A stretch of DNA of 64,000 nt from Hypanus sabinus (GCF_030144855.1 NC_082735.1:17422001-17486000); one strand, 5' to 3'; shown: positions 39,540-51,959, counted from the first letter of the stretch. The notes: generated by a model from the letters alone, not told the origin. Numbers and translations are program-made.

Positions 39540-40270
39540 AGCCGGTCCATGTCTGCAGGGCCCGCCGCTGGGCAGCGATCAGTGGTGGGAGCAGCGCCGG
39601 CGAGAGGCGGCAAAGCAACCGGGGCAAGGGGGCGGATACTGGATGGAGGGAGGGCGGCAGTCAAGGCTGCGAACTTCCTATCTCCCGGCCCTTCAACGCA
39701 GCCCGCAGCTCCCCTCGAACCGGAGCCCCGCTTCGCCGATGACCCGCCGCGGGCTCCCGTACTGGCAGCTCTGCCTCTCGGGCCCGGCTCCCGCCGCCTG
39801 GCCTGGCCTGGCCTGTACCCGCCTTCCCTCCTCCAAACCGGCTACCGCCACGGCGCAAGGTCCCGCCTCTTTCTCGAAGCTTCGCGCCGGCTCCCTGCTT
39901 CTCAACGGAGAGGGTTTTGTTTTCGTTCCGCACCGCGCTCACCGCCAGTTCCTGCTTCCTCTTCACCAGCTCGGCCAGCTCCCGCCGGGTGTCCGGGATC
40001 TGCGGTGCCTGCGCCTTGTTGTGCATCGCCATACTGGAGATGAGGAGCGGGAGGCGCCCCAAGCTGAGCCGAGCCGAACCGAACGCTTCTCCAGGCCGCA
40101 GGAGCTCGGAGGCTCGGCGGACCTCCGGGCAGCAGGGGCCGCCAGCGCGACGCCCGGAACCCGGCGGGCGGACTGCCGCCCCGAGCGCCGCCGGCAGCAC
40201 GGGAGGGCACATTGCAGCAGCCGAGCCCAGGAATGACGTCCAGGCGCACCGCCCCCTAGCGCAGTTAAAT
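39540..40270. promoter_or_regulatory. CpG island / promoter and exon 1 of MEAF6
   Basis: Sharp GC- and CpG-rich block in an AT-rich background; near-CRE TGACGTC at 40234-40240. Confidence 0.85.
39943..40032 (-). CDS. MEAF6: MEAF6 (MYST/Esa1-associated factor 6) coding exon 1
   Basis: ATG at 40032; [30 protein letters not shown] is the Eaf6 N-terminus; 90 nt; donor GCG|GTGAG; inside a CpG island. Confidence 0.97.
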
Positions 40271-43300: not shown

Positions 43301-44222
43301 GAACCTGTTACAATGGCCTTTCAAAGGATAATAATATATATTATTTGCTTGTGGTAGACAATGGCAGAAATGTTCGCAAGAATAAAAGCACTTCAGAATA
43401 CTGTAGGGCAGAAGGCTGTTCACAATTACACGAAAGAAAATTATTTCTTTGGTATTGGAGTTAGAATTGGTTTATTATTGTCACATGCTCTGAGGTACTT
43501 TGAAAATCTCGTTTTGCGTACTGTTCAAATAATTACACAGTGCTCTGAGGGTGTAAAGGTAAAATAACAACAGAATAGACCAGAATGCAATAACCACAGA
43601 GAAAGTGTATTGCACAAAGAATCTTTATGGTAAAAACCTGATCTTTTTTGGCATCGACTGACTGTCCTCATAGAAAACAGAAGTTGATGCATTTTAAGTA
43701 CAATTTATAAATAAGTGTAACACTTACCCAAAAGGCTGGTATATGTCTAGGGCAGGGGTCAGCAACCTTTACCACTGAAAGAGCCACTTGGACCCGTTTC
43801 CCACAGAAAAGAAAACACTGGGAGCCGCAAAACCCGTTTGACATTTAAAATGAAATAACACTGCATACAACGTTTTTTTTGCCTTTATGCTATGTATAAA
43901 CAAACTATAATGTGTTGCATTTATGAAATTGATGAACTCCTGCAGAGAAAACGAAATTACATTTCTGCATGCAACAAAAACATTTTGAACTCCGAAAAAA
44001 AGACGTTGGGTTGAAGGTTACTTTTAAGTAAAATACTCAACGTCTATTTGAGTCCTTCTTGTATTTATGAAAAACGCCAAACTTAAATTTGCCGCCAGCA
44101 GCAAACCAAAAATAACATCAGCCAGCTGTCAGCCTGAAAAATAAAAGGACTATTTCACTGAACAATGAAAAAATATGAATATACATAAAATAATAGGCAA
44201 TTAAAATATTTATCATACTTGG

Positions 44223-46157
44223 TTAATGGGATTTCTGCTCCTGGACCTCAGCGCACAGCGTCTGCACAGCAGGGCTGTATGACGTCACCTTCATCTTTAC
44301 ACAGGATCGCAAGCTGTCATCTGTGAGGCGTGCGCGATGTTTGTTTTTAATAAAGTTCATGTTGGAGAACACCTGCTCACATACATATGTGGATCCAAAG
44401 ATCGACAGGACTCCAAGCGCATACTTTTTCATGTTTACATAAATGTCGGGCATAGCATTCCATGTTTCGAACACAAGTTTGTCCGGTTTTGGAAGGTTTT
44501 CAATATCACTCCATTTGTGATTCTGAGCAAGAACGGCCTTCTGACGGGCAACATCTTCAAGGTCTGCTGTCAAGCGTCTAAACTTGGACACCCATATGTC
44601 TTTGTCGGCTATGTCGGCCAGTTCCATCTCAAGATCAGGTTGACTCACACCTGCCAATGCAGTCGTATTCAGTAGGGAAGGATCGATGCTTAAGGGAGTG
44701 ACCGGGAAGGATAATGTGTTTTTTTCCTCTCTGAACTCACAGAAGCGTTTCCCAAATGATGTTTGCATTGCGATGATTGCAGAATGTAAATACTCCGAAA
44801 TTATCATGTCGTGACCTTGTTTGAACTCTCTCAAATTGGGGAAGTGAGACAAAGTGCCTTTCTGTAAATCTCTGGCAAGCACTGTCAACTTGCGCTCGAA
44901 TGCCAAAACATCCTCCAACATGTGCAGGGCTGTGCGTCCTTTCCCCTGAAGAGCTGTGTTCAGCGTGTTCAGGTGCGCTGTCATGTCTACCATGAAGTGT
45001 AGCTTTTCCAGCCACTCTGGCTGTTCCAGCTCAGGAAAGGTGAGCCCTTTGCTGCCCAGGAAAGTTTTCACTTCTTCCAGACACGCGACAAAGCGTTTCA
45101 GCACCTCCCCTTTGGACAGCCACCGGACTTTGTTGTGCAGCAGGAGATCAGAATATGCGCTTTCCATCTCGTCCAGTAACAAACGGAATTGACGGTGATT
45201 TAAACTTTTTGCCATTATTTTATTGACAATCTGAATGACAACATCCATTACTTCTGTGCATTCCGGAGGAAATGTTTGAGCGCACAGTGCCTCTTGGTGC
45301 AAGATGCAGTGAAAAGTCAGCAGCTTTCTGTCCAGCGACTTCTGCAGTAAAGCCACAAATCCCTTGTGCGTTCCCGTCATATTCGGAGCCCCATCAGTAG
45401 CTACTGACACCAGATGGGTGGTCTTTATTCCTTTGGCTCTTAAACAATTCAAGACAGCCTCACAGATGTCCTCCCCCCGTGTTTGGTCTTTTAGAGGTAT
45501 CAACTCAATCAGTTCTTCCTGTGGCCCGGCAGAGTTTACATACCGGCAGAACAACGCTATTTGTTCAATATCACCTTTGTCTTTAGACTCGTCACAGGCA
45601 ATCGAGTAGGCCACAGCTGAATTGATGTCTTTAATTTGCTGTCTTGTGATGTCTTCTGCCATTTTTATGGTTCTGTCTTTGACAGTCTTTGCAGAGAGGG
45701 GCATATCCCTGATTTTCTGCACAATTTCACTCTTGTTTTTAAAGTCCGTGAATAGATGTTCTGAAATCTTAATGAAAGATTCTTTTATATATTCACCATC
45801 TGTAAACTGCTTCCCGTGCCTGACTATTTCCTGAGCGGCAATATAACTGGTGTATGTCGTTGATTTTCCAGACTTCATCCATTTCTGGAAATGATTTTTG
45901 CTCAGATCAACCTTCCGCATCAGTTCCGAAACGGCTTTTTTTCTCTCATCTCCATCCGGATATTTTTGAGCAAAGGCTGCGTGTTTACTCTGGAAATGCC
46001 TTGCGACATTTGACTTTTTGTTGTTTGCTAGTTTCTCATTGCATATTAAGCATACCGGTAAACCAGTCTCGTCAACAGTGAAAGCAAATGAATCTGTCCA
46101 CGTATCATTAAACGTTCTGTTTTCTTCAGTCACTTTTCTTTTTTTAGAATTCTCCAT
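44223..46157 (-). CDS. hAT transposase (GTF2IRD2/EPM2AIP1-like family), 644 aa, uninterrupted
   Basis: First ATG at 46157 (MENSKKRK); BED-type finger CLIC...RHFQSKH; catalytic D (ACDES), D (ATDGA), CxxH (HCILH), W (VRWLS), E (CEQVFS); C-terminal hAT dimerisation region. Confidence 0.95.
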   Translation of the reverse strand: MENSKKRKVTEENRTFNDTWTDSFAFTVDETGLPVCLICNEKLANNKKSNVARHFQSKHAAFAQKYPDGDERKKAVSELMRKVDLSKNHFQKWMKSGKSTTYTSYIAAQEIVRHGKQFTDGEYIKESFIKISEHLFTDFKNKSEIVQKIRDMPLSAKTVKDRTIKMAEDITRQQIKDINSAVAYSIACDESKDKGDIEQIALFCRYVNSAGPQEELIELIPLKDQTRGEDICEAVLNCLRAKGIKTTHLVSVATDGAPNMTGTHKGFVALLQKSLDRKLLTFHCILHQEALCAQTFPPECTEVMDVVIQIVNKIMAKSLNHRQFRLLLDEMESAYSDLLLHNKVRWLSKGEVLKRFVACLEEVKTFLGSKGLTFPELEQPEWLEKLHFMVDMTAHLNTLNTALQGKGRTALHMLEDVLAFERKLTVLARDLQKGTLSHFPNLREFKQGHDMIISEYLHSAIIAMQTSFGKRFCEFREEKNTLSFPVTPLSIDPSLLNTTALAGVSQPDLEMELADIADKDIWVSKFRRLTADLEDVARQKAVLAQNHKWSDIENLPKPDKLVFETWNAMPDIYVNMKKYALGVLSIFGSTYVCEQVFSNMNFIKNKHRARLTDDSLRSCVKMKVTSYSPAVQTLCAEVQEQKSH

Positions 46158-46255
46158 AGTTGGCTTACCTTGGATCGAAAAATTAAAGAAATCGCGCACT
46201 GGCGGGTGTCAGGTATTGGCAGTGGTGACGTATATTAATAGCGATAAAAACACGT

Positions 46256-46467
46256 CGTAGCGGTGTGCTCACGCAGTCAGTAAACTGCAGTCGAATAACT
46301 TTATTCGAACTAAACAGCCTTGCTTTTAAGCCTCCCTCAACCCAGCCCCCATGGACGCAGATGCTGCAAAAGACGCGTACTCACAAACCCCCGTAGGCTA
46401 TCTCCCTTAGCCGGAATGCTGGCTAATTGTGAGCCGTTTCGGATGTGCCAGGAAATGTGTCGCCACA
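46256..46467 (-). mobile_element. LTR-like cassette inside the hAT 5' region
   Basis: Minus strand reads TGTGGCG...CGCTACG (imperfect inverted ends), with TATA-like TTAAAA and AATAAA inside; no TSD visible. Confidence 0.45.
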
Positions 46468-48638
46468 CTTAGATTGTACAAGATCACCATAATCTTCAAA
46501 TTTAGAATTACATTTCAAAAGCTAACAAACTAACATAAAATACATTTTAATTAAATACTGACCAATTATTTCCCAAAGCCACAGGGAGCCGCAGCACAGA
46601 GGTGAAAGAGCCACAAATGGCTCGGGAGCCGCAGGTTGCTGACCCCCGGTCTAGGGGAAACGGAGATCCAGCCACTCACCAACCTACCTCCTGTTCGCAC
46701 AGGTGCTGTGAGAATCGAGTTTTATGCCTTGCGCCCGCCAACAGTATCAAACCCACAACAAATACAGTTATGAAATACACTTTAAAGAGTTTACTAAAAT
46801 TAAAAGAGTATTAGGCAATACAATATATATATAAGGAAAACAAAAGGCACCAACTTATCAAAGTTCAGTCTGTTTAGTGCACTCGTTGGAGCTCAATCAA
46901 CGAACCAACGACCCATCTGACCGCCACGCCGTCGCACCTGGGACCACCCCGGTGGTCTTACGAGCAGTCCAGCGCACGTCCACCTTCCTCAGCGTCTTCC
47001 TCCCGACTCCCCTCACACCAAAAACCCGCGAAAATCCCTCGCCCAAGCTCCCAGCCTCACAAGACACAATAACATTCCCCATTGATTAACAAATGAATAC
47101 AATTACCATATCAGCCATTCTAAAGCGAAACAACGGCGAGAGAAACACTTATCCGACAAAGAAGCATTCCTACTTGTAACAAACCAAAGAAGCCATTTTG
47201 AGTAACATACACAGGACATTGTACATAAGTAAAACATATCCAAATTTGTTCTTGATAATAATGAAAGACAAAGAAGAATCCTAATAGCTGAAATCTTTCA
47301 GAGATTGTCACGTAATGACTCGAATGTTGGAACAGAAGTGAAATCCTGAAGAAACTGAAGGGGAAATACATCAGATTGGATATTCTGAAGTTTCTGCTGG
47401 AAGCTGAACACTGTTTGGGGTTTTAGAATGTGGGGTTGCAGGAACAGTTCTGCCTAATGCACAATCTAATTTAAAATAGACAACCAGACATCACAGCAGA
47501 AATTATAGTACGGGGTCCTGGGGCAATGATGACATTGCGTCCACCTCTGTGGGCAAGCTGACTATACTTGCCCTGCGTAGGGGAATTAGGAAGCTCAAAT
47601 GGAGTCAAGAAATGAACGTTTGTTAATGACCCTATTGGCACTCGGTTCATAGACTTTATATGTGATGTGCTAACTCAGACTGCAATGAAGCACAAGAGGT
47701 TCTCCTGCTACATGCTGTCACAAATCTCATAAAATACAACTGGGAAGATGTGGTCAAAGAATAAATAATATATGGTAGCATATATAGGATATAGACCATT
47801 AAAGCACAGGAACTGATTCTTCGGCCCACAATGTTGTGCTGAACAGTTATGCTAATAACGTCTAATATCTTCCGCCTGCATATGACTCTCCATTCTCTGT
47901 GTATTCACGTGCATACCTAAGTACCTCTTAAATGCCTCTATCATTTCTGTGTCTACCAGATACCCATGCGCCCACCATGATGTAAAAAATCTTGTACATC
48001 CCCTTTAAACTTAAAGCCATGTTCTCTAGTTGGACAGTTTAACACTTGGGAAAAGATGACTGCTGTTTACACTATCTATGCCTCACATAATTTTACAAAC
48101 ATCTTTGTGATCCCCTTGCTCGTACCCCTCAGTCTGCGGCTCTCCAAATAAAACTATTCAAATTTGTCCATCCATACACATTTCTCCCTCACCCTCCATC
48201 TGGTTCCACGGAAGTTCACCCCTCCCATAATGGTTCCCATTCTCACCACGTTCACTTGTCAGAAACTGTCCCAAAGAAGGGTCTTGGCCCGAAACGGCGA
48301 CCTTTCATTCATTTCCAATAGGTGCTGCCTGACCTGCTGAGTTCCTCCAGTATTTTGTGTGTGTTGCTCAGCATTTGTAAGCAGCATTCAGAAGAAAACA
48401 AAATCATAAACTAAACATTAATTATACACAAATTTTACAAGAAATAATTAGAACAAAAAAAAAATGGTCTATTTCAGGCAAAGTGGTCAAAATGATCAGA
48501 GTGTTCTTCAATTGCAATCATTACATTATTGGCAGCTAATTCAAGAACTAAATGCTTGAAGGGAGTTAGCTGTTCTTGAACCTGTGGTGGAGGACTTCAG
48601 GTTGTGGTACCTCTCAAATGACGGCAGTTGTAATTTGT

Positions 48639-50884
48639 AAACACGAGGAAATCTGCAGATGCTGGAAATTCAAACAACACACACAAAATGCTGGTGGAAC
48701 ACAGCAGACTAGGCAGCATCTATAGGGAGAAGCGCTGTCGACGTTTTGGGCCGAGACCCTTCGTCAGGACTAACCGAAAGGAAAAATAGTAAGAGATTTG
48801 AAAGTAGTGAGGGGACGGGGAAATGCGAAATGATAGGAGAAGACCGGAGGGGGTGGATGAAGCTAAGAGCTGGAAAGGTGGTTGGCAAAAGTGATACAGA
48901 GCTGGAGAAGGGAAAGGATCATGGGACAAAGAAAGAAGTGTGGGGGGGGGGGGGGGAGCACCAGAAGGAGATGGAGAACAGGCAAACAATTAAATATGTC
49001 AGGGATGGGGTAAGAAGGGGAGGAGGGGCATTAACGGAAGTTAGAGAAGTCAATGTTCGTGCCGTCAGGTTGGAGGCTACCCAGCCAGTATATAAGGTGT
49101 CGTTCCTCCAACCTGAGTTTGGATTCATCTTGACAATAGAGGAGGCCATGGATAGACATATCAGAATGGGAATGGGACGTGGAATTAAAATGTGTGGCCA
49201 CTGGGAGATCCTGCTTTTTCTGGCGGACAAAATGTTCCGCAAAATGGTCTCCCGGTCTGTGTCAGGTCTCACCAATATATAAAAGGCCACACCAGGAGCA
49301 CCGGACGCAGTATACCACACCAGCCAACTCACAGGTGAAGTGTCGCCTCACCTGGAAGGACTGTCTGGGGCCCTGAATGGTGGTGAGGGAGGAAGTGTAA
49401 GGGCAGGTGTAGCACTTGTTCTGTTTACAAGGATAAGTGCCAGGAGGGAGATCGGTGGGAAGGGGTGGGGGGGGATGAGAGGACAAGGGAGTCGCGTAGG
49501 GAGCAGAAAGCAGAAAGAGGGGGGGGGAGGGAAAAATGTGTTTGGTAGTGGGATCCCGTTGGAAGTGGTGGAAGTTATGGAGAATTATATGTTGGACCTG
49601 GAGGCTGGTGGGGTGGTAGGTAAGGACAAGGGGAACCCTATCCCAAGTGGGGTGGCAGGTGGATGGGGTGAGGGCAGATGTGCGGGAAATGGGAGAGATG
49701 CGTTTGAGAGCAGAGTTGATGGTGGACGAAGGGAAGCCCCTTTGTTTAAAAAAGGAAGACACCTCCTTCGTCCTGGAAAGAAAAGCCTCATCCTGAGAGC
49801 AGATGCGGTGGAGACGGAGGAATTGTGAGAAGGGGATAGCATTTTTGCAAGAGACAGGGTGGGAAGAGGAATAGTCCGGGTAGCTGTGAGAGTCTGTAGG
49901 CTTATAGTAGATATCAGTAGATAGGCCATCTCCAGAAATGGAGACAGAAAGATCAAGAAAGGGGAGGGAGGTGTCAGAAATGGACCAGGTAAATTTGAGG
50001 GCAGGGTGAAAGTTGGAGACAAAGTTAATGAAGTCGACGAGCTCAGCATGTGTGCAAGAGGCAGCGCCAATGCAGTCGTCGATGTAGCAAAGGAAAAGAG
50101 GGGGATGGATAGCCTCGGAACATGGACTCTTCCATAAAGCCAACAAAAAGGCAGGCATAACTGGGACCCATACGGGTGCCCATGGCTACACCCTTGGATT
50201 GGGGGAAGTGGGAGAAGTCAAAGGAGAAATTATTGAGAGTAAGAACTAATTCCGCTAGACAGAGGAGAGTGGTGGTAGAGGAGATTTGGCTAGGTCTGGA
50301 ATCCAAAAAAAAAACCGAAGAGCTTCGAGACCATCTCAGTGGGGGATGGAGGTATATAGGGACTGGACGTCCATGGTGAAAATAAGATGGAGGGGGCCAG
50401 GGAACTTAAAATCATTGAAAAAATTCAAAGCATGAGAAGTGTCACGAACATAGGTGGGAAGCGATTGAACAAGGGGGGATAAGACAGTGTCAAGGTATGC
50501 AGAAATGAGTTCAGTGGGGCAGGAGCAAGCTGAGACAATAGGTCTACCTGGACAGGCAGGTTTGTGGATCTTGGGTAGGAGGTAGAAACAGGAAGTGCGG
50601 GGTGTGGGAACTATGAGGTTTGTGGCAGTGGATGGGAGATCCCCAGGGCTAATAAGGTTGGTGATGGTATAGGAGACAATGGCCTGGTGCTCCTTGGTGG
50701 AATCATGATCAAGGGGTAAATAAGAGGAGGTATGAGAGTTGTCGCTGTGTCTCGGCCAGGTAGAGGTCAGTACACCAGACAACAGCTCCCCCCTTATCAG
50801 CAGGTTTTATAGTGAGGTTGGGATTGGTGCGGAGGGAGCGGAGAGCAGAGCATCCGGAAGGAGTGAGGTTGGAATTGGAACAAT
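48639..50884 (-). mobile_element. Penelope-like retroelement (RT + GIY-YIG endonuclease + 3' pseudo-LTR), 5'-truncated and frameshifted
   Basis: IKPADKGGAVV, FYLLPKIHK, TMDVQSLYTSIPH, GVAMGTRMGPSYA, CYIDDC; GIY-YIG VVYCVRCSWCGLLYIGET; 15-bp direct repeat GCAGTTGTAATTTGT at 48624-38 and 50885-99. Confidence 0.93.
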
Positions 50885-51959
50885 GCAGTTGTAATTTGTT
50901 GAGGATCACTGACAGATGCCTGAGGCAGTCCCTCCCACCTGTATTACCACTGGTGGGGAGGGATGTGCCCATGAGTTATTAAGTAGAGTCCATCACACCG
51001 CTCTTTGCTGTACACTCCTGACCTTCAAATTGCCATACCAGCCAACTAGTCCAGCTATCTACGGAAGTTTGTTTGGGTCCAATGATAAGCGGAACTTCCT
51101 AACAAAATGGACACTGGCACACTTTCATTATGATTGCATCTATAAAATGAGCCCAGTACAGGTCATCCAACATACTGGCACGCAGTATTCTTCCCTCTGC
51201 TGACCACCAGTCACTGATGTATGACCAAGGTGCTGTGTTATGGACAAGAATAATGATTGGAGTCCCCCAGTACTTGACATGGTATATTCTTTAAATAAAG
51301 CCTCAAACCATTTTCATGGAACTGTCATAAATAAATTTAAATCTTACACCTCCCTCCCACAATCTTACATTCAATTCTGACATATATTGTCAACCAGCAT
51401 TCAATAATTGGCTACGACAACAGTAATTCAAAAGCAAGTTGTCCATTTTGTTAATGAAGCAACCCGGTTAAGTTACTGTAGTTAAGATATAAATATCTCT
51501 GGATTCTTTAAGTCCCACCATGACAGTCTGGAACTTTGAATTTAGTTAATTAAATATAGTGTATTGGGAATTTAAAATCTAATCTTGGAAACGATGCATG
51601 GGGAAAAATTGTCCAGTAAATTTGTTTGGTTATCTAATGTGTATTTTGGGAGAGACCTGCTATTCTCATCTGGCCTGGTCTGAATTATTTTATTCCATGT
51701 GCCGGAAACATGCAGACATACAATCAGTATATTATCACCTTTATTCACTGTACTGCGCAATTGAATGTGTTAGTGTCACTAATGTCTCATCTCCAAGCAT
51801 TCAGTCAGAATAACCTATGAGATTACATGGACCCACACCCTCCGCATCCAGCCAGGACCATAGACTGCTCTCTTCTTCCAGAACCATTGCAGTTGCTGCA
51901 CCAAACTTCAAGTCCCTGAGAATATAACCTCACATCAGTAGCATTCAGTTGCAGGTGTC

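Follow-up and report, generated by a model that had tools for sequence, protein, structure and literature searches.

Evidence for a young, complete Buster-type hAT transposon near MEAF6 in the stingray Hypanus sabinus and for horizontal transfer of its family

Within the hAT superfamily, Buster and SPIN elements are grouped in the Buster family, as opposed to the Ac family, and the target consensus reported for TcBuster is nnnTAnnn (PMC3499496). The Buster family (TcBuster and SPIN, with the derivatives ZBED5, FAM200 and GTF2IRD2) has a history of horizontal transfer among animals. For another autonomous hAT, hAT-6_XT, horizontal transfer was reported between turtles, fishes and a frog, and cartilaginous fishes, squamates and tunicates are not among its reported hosts (PMC11008031). 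The main text of a large vertebrate survey contains no mention of cartilaginous fishes (PMC7070016). Here we describe a hAT element in a stretch of 64,000 nucleotides (nt) from the stingray Hypanus sabinus (GCF_030144855.1, NC_082735.1:17422001-17486000). We call this whole stretch the window and count positions from its first letter. As read directly from the sequence, the element occupies positions 43753-46648 (2896 bp), and its transposase open reading frame (ORF) lies on the minus strand. It is very probably a young, complete, autonomous Buster-type copy, whose family is multi-copy in rays and was repeatedly transferred horizontally among rays, teleosts, squamates, a salamander and a tunicate. 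Such a history of transfer is common to this family and to the Buster family. The two also share the 8-bp target-site duplication (TSD) with a central TA, a length of about 2.7-2.9 kb and a single intronless ORF of about 640 amino acids (aa). In both, the protein starts with a C2H2/BED-like finger and contains DUF4371 and an RNase-H-like DDE domain interrupted by an alpha-helical insertion; a hAT dimerisation region at the C-terminus is probably shared as well. The likeness to hAT-6_XT extends to an autonomous organization, intact copies with terminal inverted repeats (TIRs) and TSDs, non-autonomous derivatives and repeated transfer among aquatic vertebrates. We considered hAT-6_XT as the same family and rejected it: its termini differ, beginning CAGAGAAC (PMC11008031), while the TIR of the window element reads CAGGGGTC[A/G]GCAACC. 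The TIR strings of the window element are absent from the searchable literature; Repbase and Dfam may still list the family.

The ends of the element were determined by reading the sequence (Table 1). It is flanked by an 8-bp TSD, as expected for the hAT superfamily, and TSDs of this length were also found around the Metynnis, Perca and both Menidia copies described below. The TIRs of hAT elements are short and start with CAG or TAG; in the window copy the 3' end (in element orientation) starts with CAG and the 5' end with CGG. When extended to 16 nt (43753-43768 and 46633-46648), the two TIRs agree at 15/16 positions and differ only in position 2, where the end lying upstream of the ORF has CGGGGG as against CAGGGG. 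We searched the 64 kb for the 15-mer TIR with up to two mismatches. It turned out that it occurs in two places only, which are the two element ends (chance expectation 0.13). The observed/expected ratio of CpG is 0.72 in the element and 0.66 in the ORF, compared to 0.35 for the window as a whole and 0.32 for the left flank (3 kb). The start codon in exon 1 of MEAF6, which lies on the minus strand within a CpG island, is at 40032, 3.72 kb from the element edge, and MEAF6 and the transposase have the same orientation. The sequence-only reading of this DNA had claimed an uninterrupted 644-aa ORF, a perfect TSD with TIRs matching at 15/16 positions, retention of CpG and a location about 3.7 kb upstream of the MEAF6 start codon, and all of this was confirmed. 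The length of 644 aa is counted from the ATG; the ORF listed as 658 aa starts at an upstream GTG. The same reading held that every other transposable element in the window is decayed. Here we made a rough check only: in the 64-kb window, no ORF of at least 200 aa besides the transposase has a Pfam match. Rfam gave no match in or around the hAT element.

We assessed the conservation of the transposase on an alignment of 57 family sequences, with relatives down to 44% identity. The D-D-E triad and the CxxH and RW motifs, which had been proposed earlier from the single sequence, are invariant or at least 90% conserved across this alignment. In the N-terminal finger, C36, C39 and H59 do not vary, the conservation of H54 is at least 90%, and the AlphaFold2 model has the beta-beta-alpha secondary structure at this place. 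This finger had been called a BED finger. The name is roughly right: the best Pfam match, slightly under the cut-off, is to the C2H2 family PF18658 and not to zf-BED. Pfam matches to DUF4371, to the SPIN-DOC-type C2H2 finger (PF18658) and to the hAT dimerisation domain all score slightly below the respective gathering threshold. For the last of these (PF05699, residues 562-620) the match scores 20.1 bits against a cut-off of 21.4, with an E-value of 5.5e-4, and several close homologues carry PF05699 in precomputed annotation. Upstream of the finger, KKRKV at residues 5-9 resembles a nuclear localisation signal. A sequence search of the PDB returned nothing at E<=1, and therefore a fold search was needed. 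The AlphaFold2 model built from the 57-sequence alignment has a mean predicted local distance difference test score (pLDDT) of 80.5. Using Foldseek against the PDB, we found that the top 12 matches are all the Hermes hAT transposase (E-values 9e-10 to 7e-8, probability 1.0). The window protein has in common with Hermes the overall fold (about 550-625 aligned columns), the DDE triad and the CxxH and W motifs, and both elements have short subterminal repeats, although the sequence identity is only 14-16%. The model thus predicts the Hermes-like RNase-H-like DDE fold which, together with the CxxH and W motifs, marks hAT transposases. To our knowledge, Hermes is the only hAT with solved structures. 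It is an Ac-family hAT, with a target consensus different from that of the Buster family.

In order to place the element within the superfamily, we compared target sites. The TSD is GTCTAGGG in the window, GTCTAGGG and GTCTAGTG around the two Menidia copies, AGCTAGAC in Metynnis and GGTTAGGT in Perca. The TSDs or half-sites are CTCTAGTC in a European Nucleotide Archive (ENA) contig, GTCTAGGC in Crotalus and CCTTAAGC in Clavelina. T-A is found at positions 4-5 in 8/8 of these TSDs or half-sites, and CTAG in 6/8, so that all eight sites agree with the nnnTAnnn consensus of the Buster family. In homologues with 97-99% identity to the window protein, Pfam annotates FAM200-ZBED5_RNase-like and FAM200-GTF2IRD2-like. 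Judging by the TSD consensus and the set of domains, the element probably belongs with the Buster family of hAT. Of the Buster/SPIN-group placement made earlier, the Buster type is supported by nnnTAnnn and, indirectly, by DUF4371, the SPIN-DOC finger and the Pfam families of the homologues. The bat and insect proteins nearest in our search share only about 50% identity with the window protein, which suggests a separate family within the Buster group. SPIN may or may not be among these proteins, and it is from them that the separateness from SPIN, OC1 and TcBuster is judged. The hosts in which we saw the window family are mainly aquatic animals and squamates.

A word search for protein relatives returned 262. 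The Hypanus protein cluster has 73 members, including three full 644-aa models on different chromosomes. Many RefSeq models of H. sabinus, which carry the name 'GTF2IRD2-like', show 98.6-99.4% identity to the window protein, whose exact sequence is not in the protein collection searched. Older, more diverged copies of the family (88-95% identity) are also present in Hypanus. As sequencing evidence, we used Logan contigs from four runs of related species. The family is present in 4/4 runs, and the ORF contigs are 97.9-99.8% identical to the window. M569 is common to the window and the Hypanus models and was found in no contig of the four runs (place 44451). Together with the identity to the Hypanus models, this one substitution suggests a dasyatid host, H. 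sabinus or a very close relative, for the window and other related species as the sources of the runs. The contigs also contain internal-deletion joints, for example 44020->46152, 43880->45388, 44106->45892, 44785->46222 and 45109->45990, several of them with 2-3 nt of microhomology. Internal deletions with microhomology are typical of gap repair that was aborted following hAT excision. Contig depth over the termini is several-fold to ~25-fold above ORF depth, which points to many non-autonomous derivatives. S57, M331 and E640 are common only to the window copy and the Hypanus copy P0129, and the two group together in trees. This indicates that both derive from the master of a sub-lineage and that several rounds of transposition took place in rays. 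In the sister copy P0124 the catalytic glutamate is changed (E594K); the window copy retains E.

To estimate the age of the window copy, we defined its private changes against three full-length Hypanus copies and found two, A103T and D630A (Table 1). Each of the four runs has a contig in which 43744 is followed directly by 46649, with eight letters in common and a single GTCTAGGG. Contigs of this kind, with one GTCTAGGG, confirm the element boundaries and the duplication. They extend for only 29-30 nt on each side, within a high-copy host repeat, and may therefore be paralogous sites. The repeat makes up the flanks (43716-43752 and 46657-~47000), where the summed depth reaches thousands to tens of thousands in the four runs, and its boundary lies near 43716. 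We found no other copy of it in the 64-kb window and no Rfam match. Substitution rates in elasmobranchs are slow, and given these rates an age of roughly 1 to 10 million years (My) is possible for the insertion. It had been read as very recent. The approximately 99% identity and the CpG content support a young insertion; a very recent one is only plausible, considering A103T, D630A, the TIR change and the slow rates.

We also compared the element with relatives in other animals. For Metynnis hypsauchen (L001), Perca flavescens (L008) and Menidia (two copies, L005 and L006) the comparison used full elements with TIRs, TSDs and intact 643-644-aa ORFs. For Crotalus tigris (L003), for Clavelina (L004) and for two contigs, one from Logan (L002) and one from ENA (L007), it used loci bearing the ORF. 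Synonymous divergence (dS) was calculated by the Nei-Gojobori method from the window ray copy. It is 0.14 to the Logan contig, 0.20 to Perca, 0.25 to Metynnis, 0.37 to Crotalus, 0.49 to the ENA contig, 0.65 to Menidia and 0.74 to the tunicate Clavelina. The Logan contig, which comes from run ERR6050756, is the closest non-ray relative. The two teleosts Metynnis and Menidia differ from each other (dS 0.58) more than the ray differs from Metynnis. The ratio of nonsynonymous to synonymous divergence (dN/dS) is 0.15-0.27 across the compared elements. Non-coding ends are about 80% identical among the ray, Metynnis, the Logan contig and Crotalus. A single protein cluster at 90% identity includes the stingrays Hypanus and Hemitrygon and the teleosts Metynnis, Perca, Cottoperca and Pogonophryne. 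Relatives with 79-87% identity were found in a skink, vipers, a monitor, the axolotl, a silverside, a medaka and Clavelina. In the maximum-likelihood tree, the ray, Perca and Metynnis elements form a clade (support 99/98). This clade is nested among elements of squamates, the axolotl, the tunicate and other teleosts. The approximately unbiased (AU) test rejects a topology with bony vertebrates as one clade apart from the ray and the tunicate (log-likelihood difference 63, p 0.0029). Thus, dS is far below the host expectation, the tree is incongruent with the hosts and the distribution is patchy. These sequence comparisons strongly support the spread of the family between animals by horizontal transfer, and the earlier suggestion of such transfer is now backed by dS, non-coding identity, patchy hosts and the rejected species-tree topology. 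Among viral contigs, no relative was found, hence there is no lead on a viral vector. The two Menidia copies (L005:2169-5030 and L006:2169-5030) are 99.9% identical (dS 0.002) and lie at different sites, which suggests a very recent transposition in the silverside.

It is possible, though we do not regard it as probable, that the window copy is an intact-looking but immobile fossil. In this case the family would have stopped in rays, the slow change of elasmobranch DNA would have preserved the copy, and the TIR change, A103T or D630A may disable it. Several observations do weigh against a young, mobile copy of a repeatedly transferred family. The 5' TIR of the window copy has G at position 2, in the most conserved terminal trinucleotide, and all other clear termini examined have CAG; this G could impair mobilisation of the copy in cis. 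One of the two private substitutions, A103T, hits a 95%-conserved residue. In the 3' non-coding region, there is no sense-orientation AATAAA or ATTAAA. Depths were summed over contigs, so that copy numbers are qualitative only. Finally, the prediction of a dS of about 2.8, that is saturation, for a split of ~450 My rests on a published average for vertebrates, 3.1e-9 synonymous changes per site and year (PMC7070016), and not on host-gene dS. The fossil explanation is also favored by the sister copy that has already lost its catalytic glutamate. Against it, the ORF of the window copy is fully open, every catalytic and structural motif is kept and the CpG content is retained. Moreover, several full-length ORFs exist at about 99% identity, and the substitutions shared within a sublineage speak of repeated recent rounds of transposition. 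With an open ORF, its catalytic residues and both ends present, the copy appears autonomous, position 2 of the 5' TIR being altered.

The similarity across classes could in principle come from ancient vertical inheritance under very strong purifying selection. The dN/dS values do show constraint on the protein, and the older Hypanus copies exist. We nevertheless consider this explanation very improbable. Selection on a protein cannot hold dS at 0.14-0.37, or non-coding identity at 80%, for more than 400 My, and the low dS and the alignable non-coding DNA together are therefore beyond what vertical descent under selection can explain. Even with slow elasmobranch evolution, the teleost branch alone should saturate dS. 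The element tree conflicts with the species tree, whose topology is rejected, and the copies are dispersed, multi-copy and flanked by TSDs. It is even harder to believe that the ORF is a domesticated transposase gene serving the host, similar to GTF2IRD2, FAM200 or ZBED5. The names of the RefSeq homologues ('GTF2IRD2-like', 'FAM200C-like') suggest this, and in squamate models the transposase is found joined to KRAB and SCAN domains; the names, however, come from automated annotation. A domesticated gene is expected to be single-copy, syntenic and devoid of TIRs and TSD. The window element keeps its TIRs and a perfect TSD, dozens of near-identical Hypanus paralogues lie on different chromosomes, and non-autonomous derivatives exist. 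The same paralogues bear out that this is a multi-copy transposon and not a domesticated gene. Taken together, the data support an intact, autonomous Buster-type hAT element that is multi-copy and young.

If the element is such a transposon, its history and mode of action may be as follows, by analogy with hAT biochemistry. It would have been inserted by cut-and-paste into a GTCTAGGG site within the high-copy host repeat upstream of MEAF6. Binding of the 644-aa transposase to the TIRs and to the subterminal G[CT]GGCTC motifs would rely on its N-terminal zinc finger, and the RNase-H-like site formed by D189, D255 and E594 would cut the DNA. Reinsertion would occur by an 8-bp staggered cut centred on TA. 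The sequences do show that the family underwent successive rounds of transposition in stingrays and gave rise to many internally deleted non-autonomous derivatives.

The non-coding parts of the element were also compared. The clear termini of other taxa are CAGGGGTCGGCAACC; the 3' end of the Crotalus copy is degenerate and was left unscored. In the ray subfamily, both ends have A at position 9, a change of the CpG-transition type. Four copies of the motif G[CT]GGCTC lie within the first 75 nt of the element and two within its last 80 nt, in one orientation throughout, and these motifs are kept in the Metynnis element. They are likely transposase-binding repeats, by analogy with other hATs. The block next to the ATG, with ACGTCAC and CCAAT, sits between the AT-rich subterminal part and the ATG and is a candidate promoter. 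At 46164-46170 on the minus strand, 7 nt before the transposase ATG, there is a splice-donor-like AG|GTAAG. Its counterpart is AGGTAGG in the Metynnis, Perca and Logan copies, and it is not conserved in the Crotalus, Clavelina, Menidia and ENA copies. As a family-wide feature it was ruled out, being kept in the ray/Metynnis/Perca/Logan subgroup only. In the Logan contigs, most copies of three related species skip the insert 46251-46468 (joint 46250->46469), and two runs (organisms A and E) have it at very high depth. This insert resembles a fragment captured from another repeat, and a small hairpin in it (TCGAATAAAGTTATTCGA) contains AATAAA.

Table 1. Features of the hAT element in the H. sabinus window (residue numbers refer to the 644-aa transposase)
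Feature	Position	Strand	Remarks
Left TSD GTCTAGGG	43745-43752	.	8 bp, identical to 46649-46656
3' TIR (element orientation), plus strand CAGGGGTCAGCAACC	43753-43767	-	homologous to CAGGGGTCGGCAACC ends of Metynnis, Perca, Menidia and Clavelina elements
3' non-coding region, subterminal G[CT]GGCTC motifs	43768-44222	-	~80% identity to Metynnis, Logan and Crotalus 3' ends
Transposase ORF, 644 aa + stop, uninterrupted	44223-46157	-	ATG at 46157, stop at 44223
Private substitution D630A	44268-44270	-	aspartate codon (place 44269) in all contigs of all four runs
Catalytic E594 (CEQxFS motif)	44376-44378	-	98% conserved
RW motif R345-W346	45120-45125	-	W346 invariant
CxxH motif C284-x2-H287	45297-45308	-	H287 invariant, C284 at least 90% conserved
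Catalytic D255 (ATDGA motif)	45393-45395	-	invariant column
Catalytic D189 (ACDES motif)	45591-45593	-	at least 90% conserved, codon checked
Private substitution A103T	45849-45851	-	site 95% alanine in family; alanine codon (place 45851) in all contigs of the three runs with depth there
C2H2 (BED-like / SPIN-DOC-type) zinc finger C36-x2-C39...H54-x4-H59	45981-46052	-	PF18658, E 5.7e-6
Conserved ATG-proximal block, ACGTCAC + CCAAT	46158-46250	-	~81% identity with Metynnis, Perca and Logan copies
Lineage-specific insert, ~210 nt, 5' non-coding	46251-46468	-	unmatched in elements of other taxa
5' subterminal region, four G[CT]GGCTC motifs and AT-rich stretch	46469-46633	-	~80% identity to Metynnis and Logan copies
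5' TIR CGGGGGTCAGCAACC (element orientation)	46634-46648	-	G at position 2, from TIR comparison
Right TSD GTCTAGGG	46649-46656	.	perfect match to left copy

Some further observations were made on relatives of the element and on its surroundings. In Crotalus tigris (L003:1075-2489), a second hAT-like pair of termini, CAGGGGTTCTCAACC ... GACCCCTG, with CTAGGC flanks, lies directly upstream of the transposase ORF. The 5' part of this copy appears nested with, or replaced by, another element. In the squamate models P0005 (Tiliqua) and P0007 and P0008 (Crotalus tigris), of 874-1108 aa, a transposase 83-84% identical to the window protein is fused to KRAB (PF01352) and SCAN (PF02023) domains. These models may be host-transposase fusions or annotation read-through. 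The metatranscriptomic RNA runs X16-X19 (fish metagenome, fish gut metagenome) hold 10-14% of the words of the stretch. Outside the element, the window has a strong positive GC skew (+0.3 to +0.5) at 48500-51000, and within this part a 298-aa ORF on the minus strand (49262-50158) is without a Pfam match.

Horizontal transfer of DNA transposons in vertebrates is well documented, mostly in ray-finned fishes, bats and reptiles. Sharing between stingrays and teleosts at dS 0.14-0.25 would extend the transfer network to cartilaginous fishes. We suggest, tentatively, that the family may still transpose in stingrays and that a recent network of transfer (dS 0.1-0.25, tens of My or less) connects its hosts. 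If this is true, the element offers a naturally intact, ready-to-test vertebrate transposase of the Buster-type hAT group. Such intact transposases are candidate gene-transfer tools beside TcBuster, and the natural variants from the ray, Perca, Metynnis and Menidia could be compared. The insertion 3.7 kb upstream of the CpG-island promoter of MEAF6, with a candidate promoter in the same orientation, may have regulatory effects. The element would also be a dated marker for the invasion of a slowly evolving lineage by a transposable element, and the network, if real, joins cartilaginous fishes, distant teleost orders, squamates, a salamander and a tunicate.

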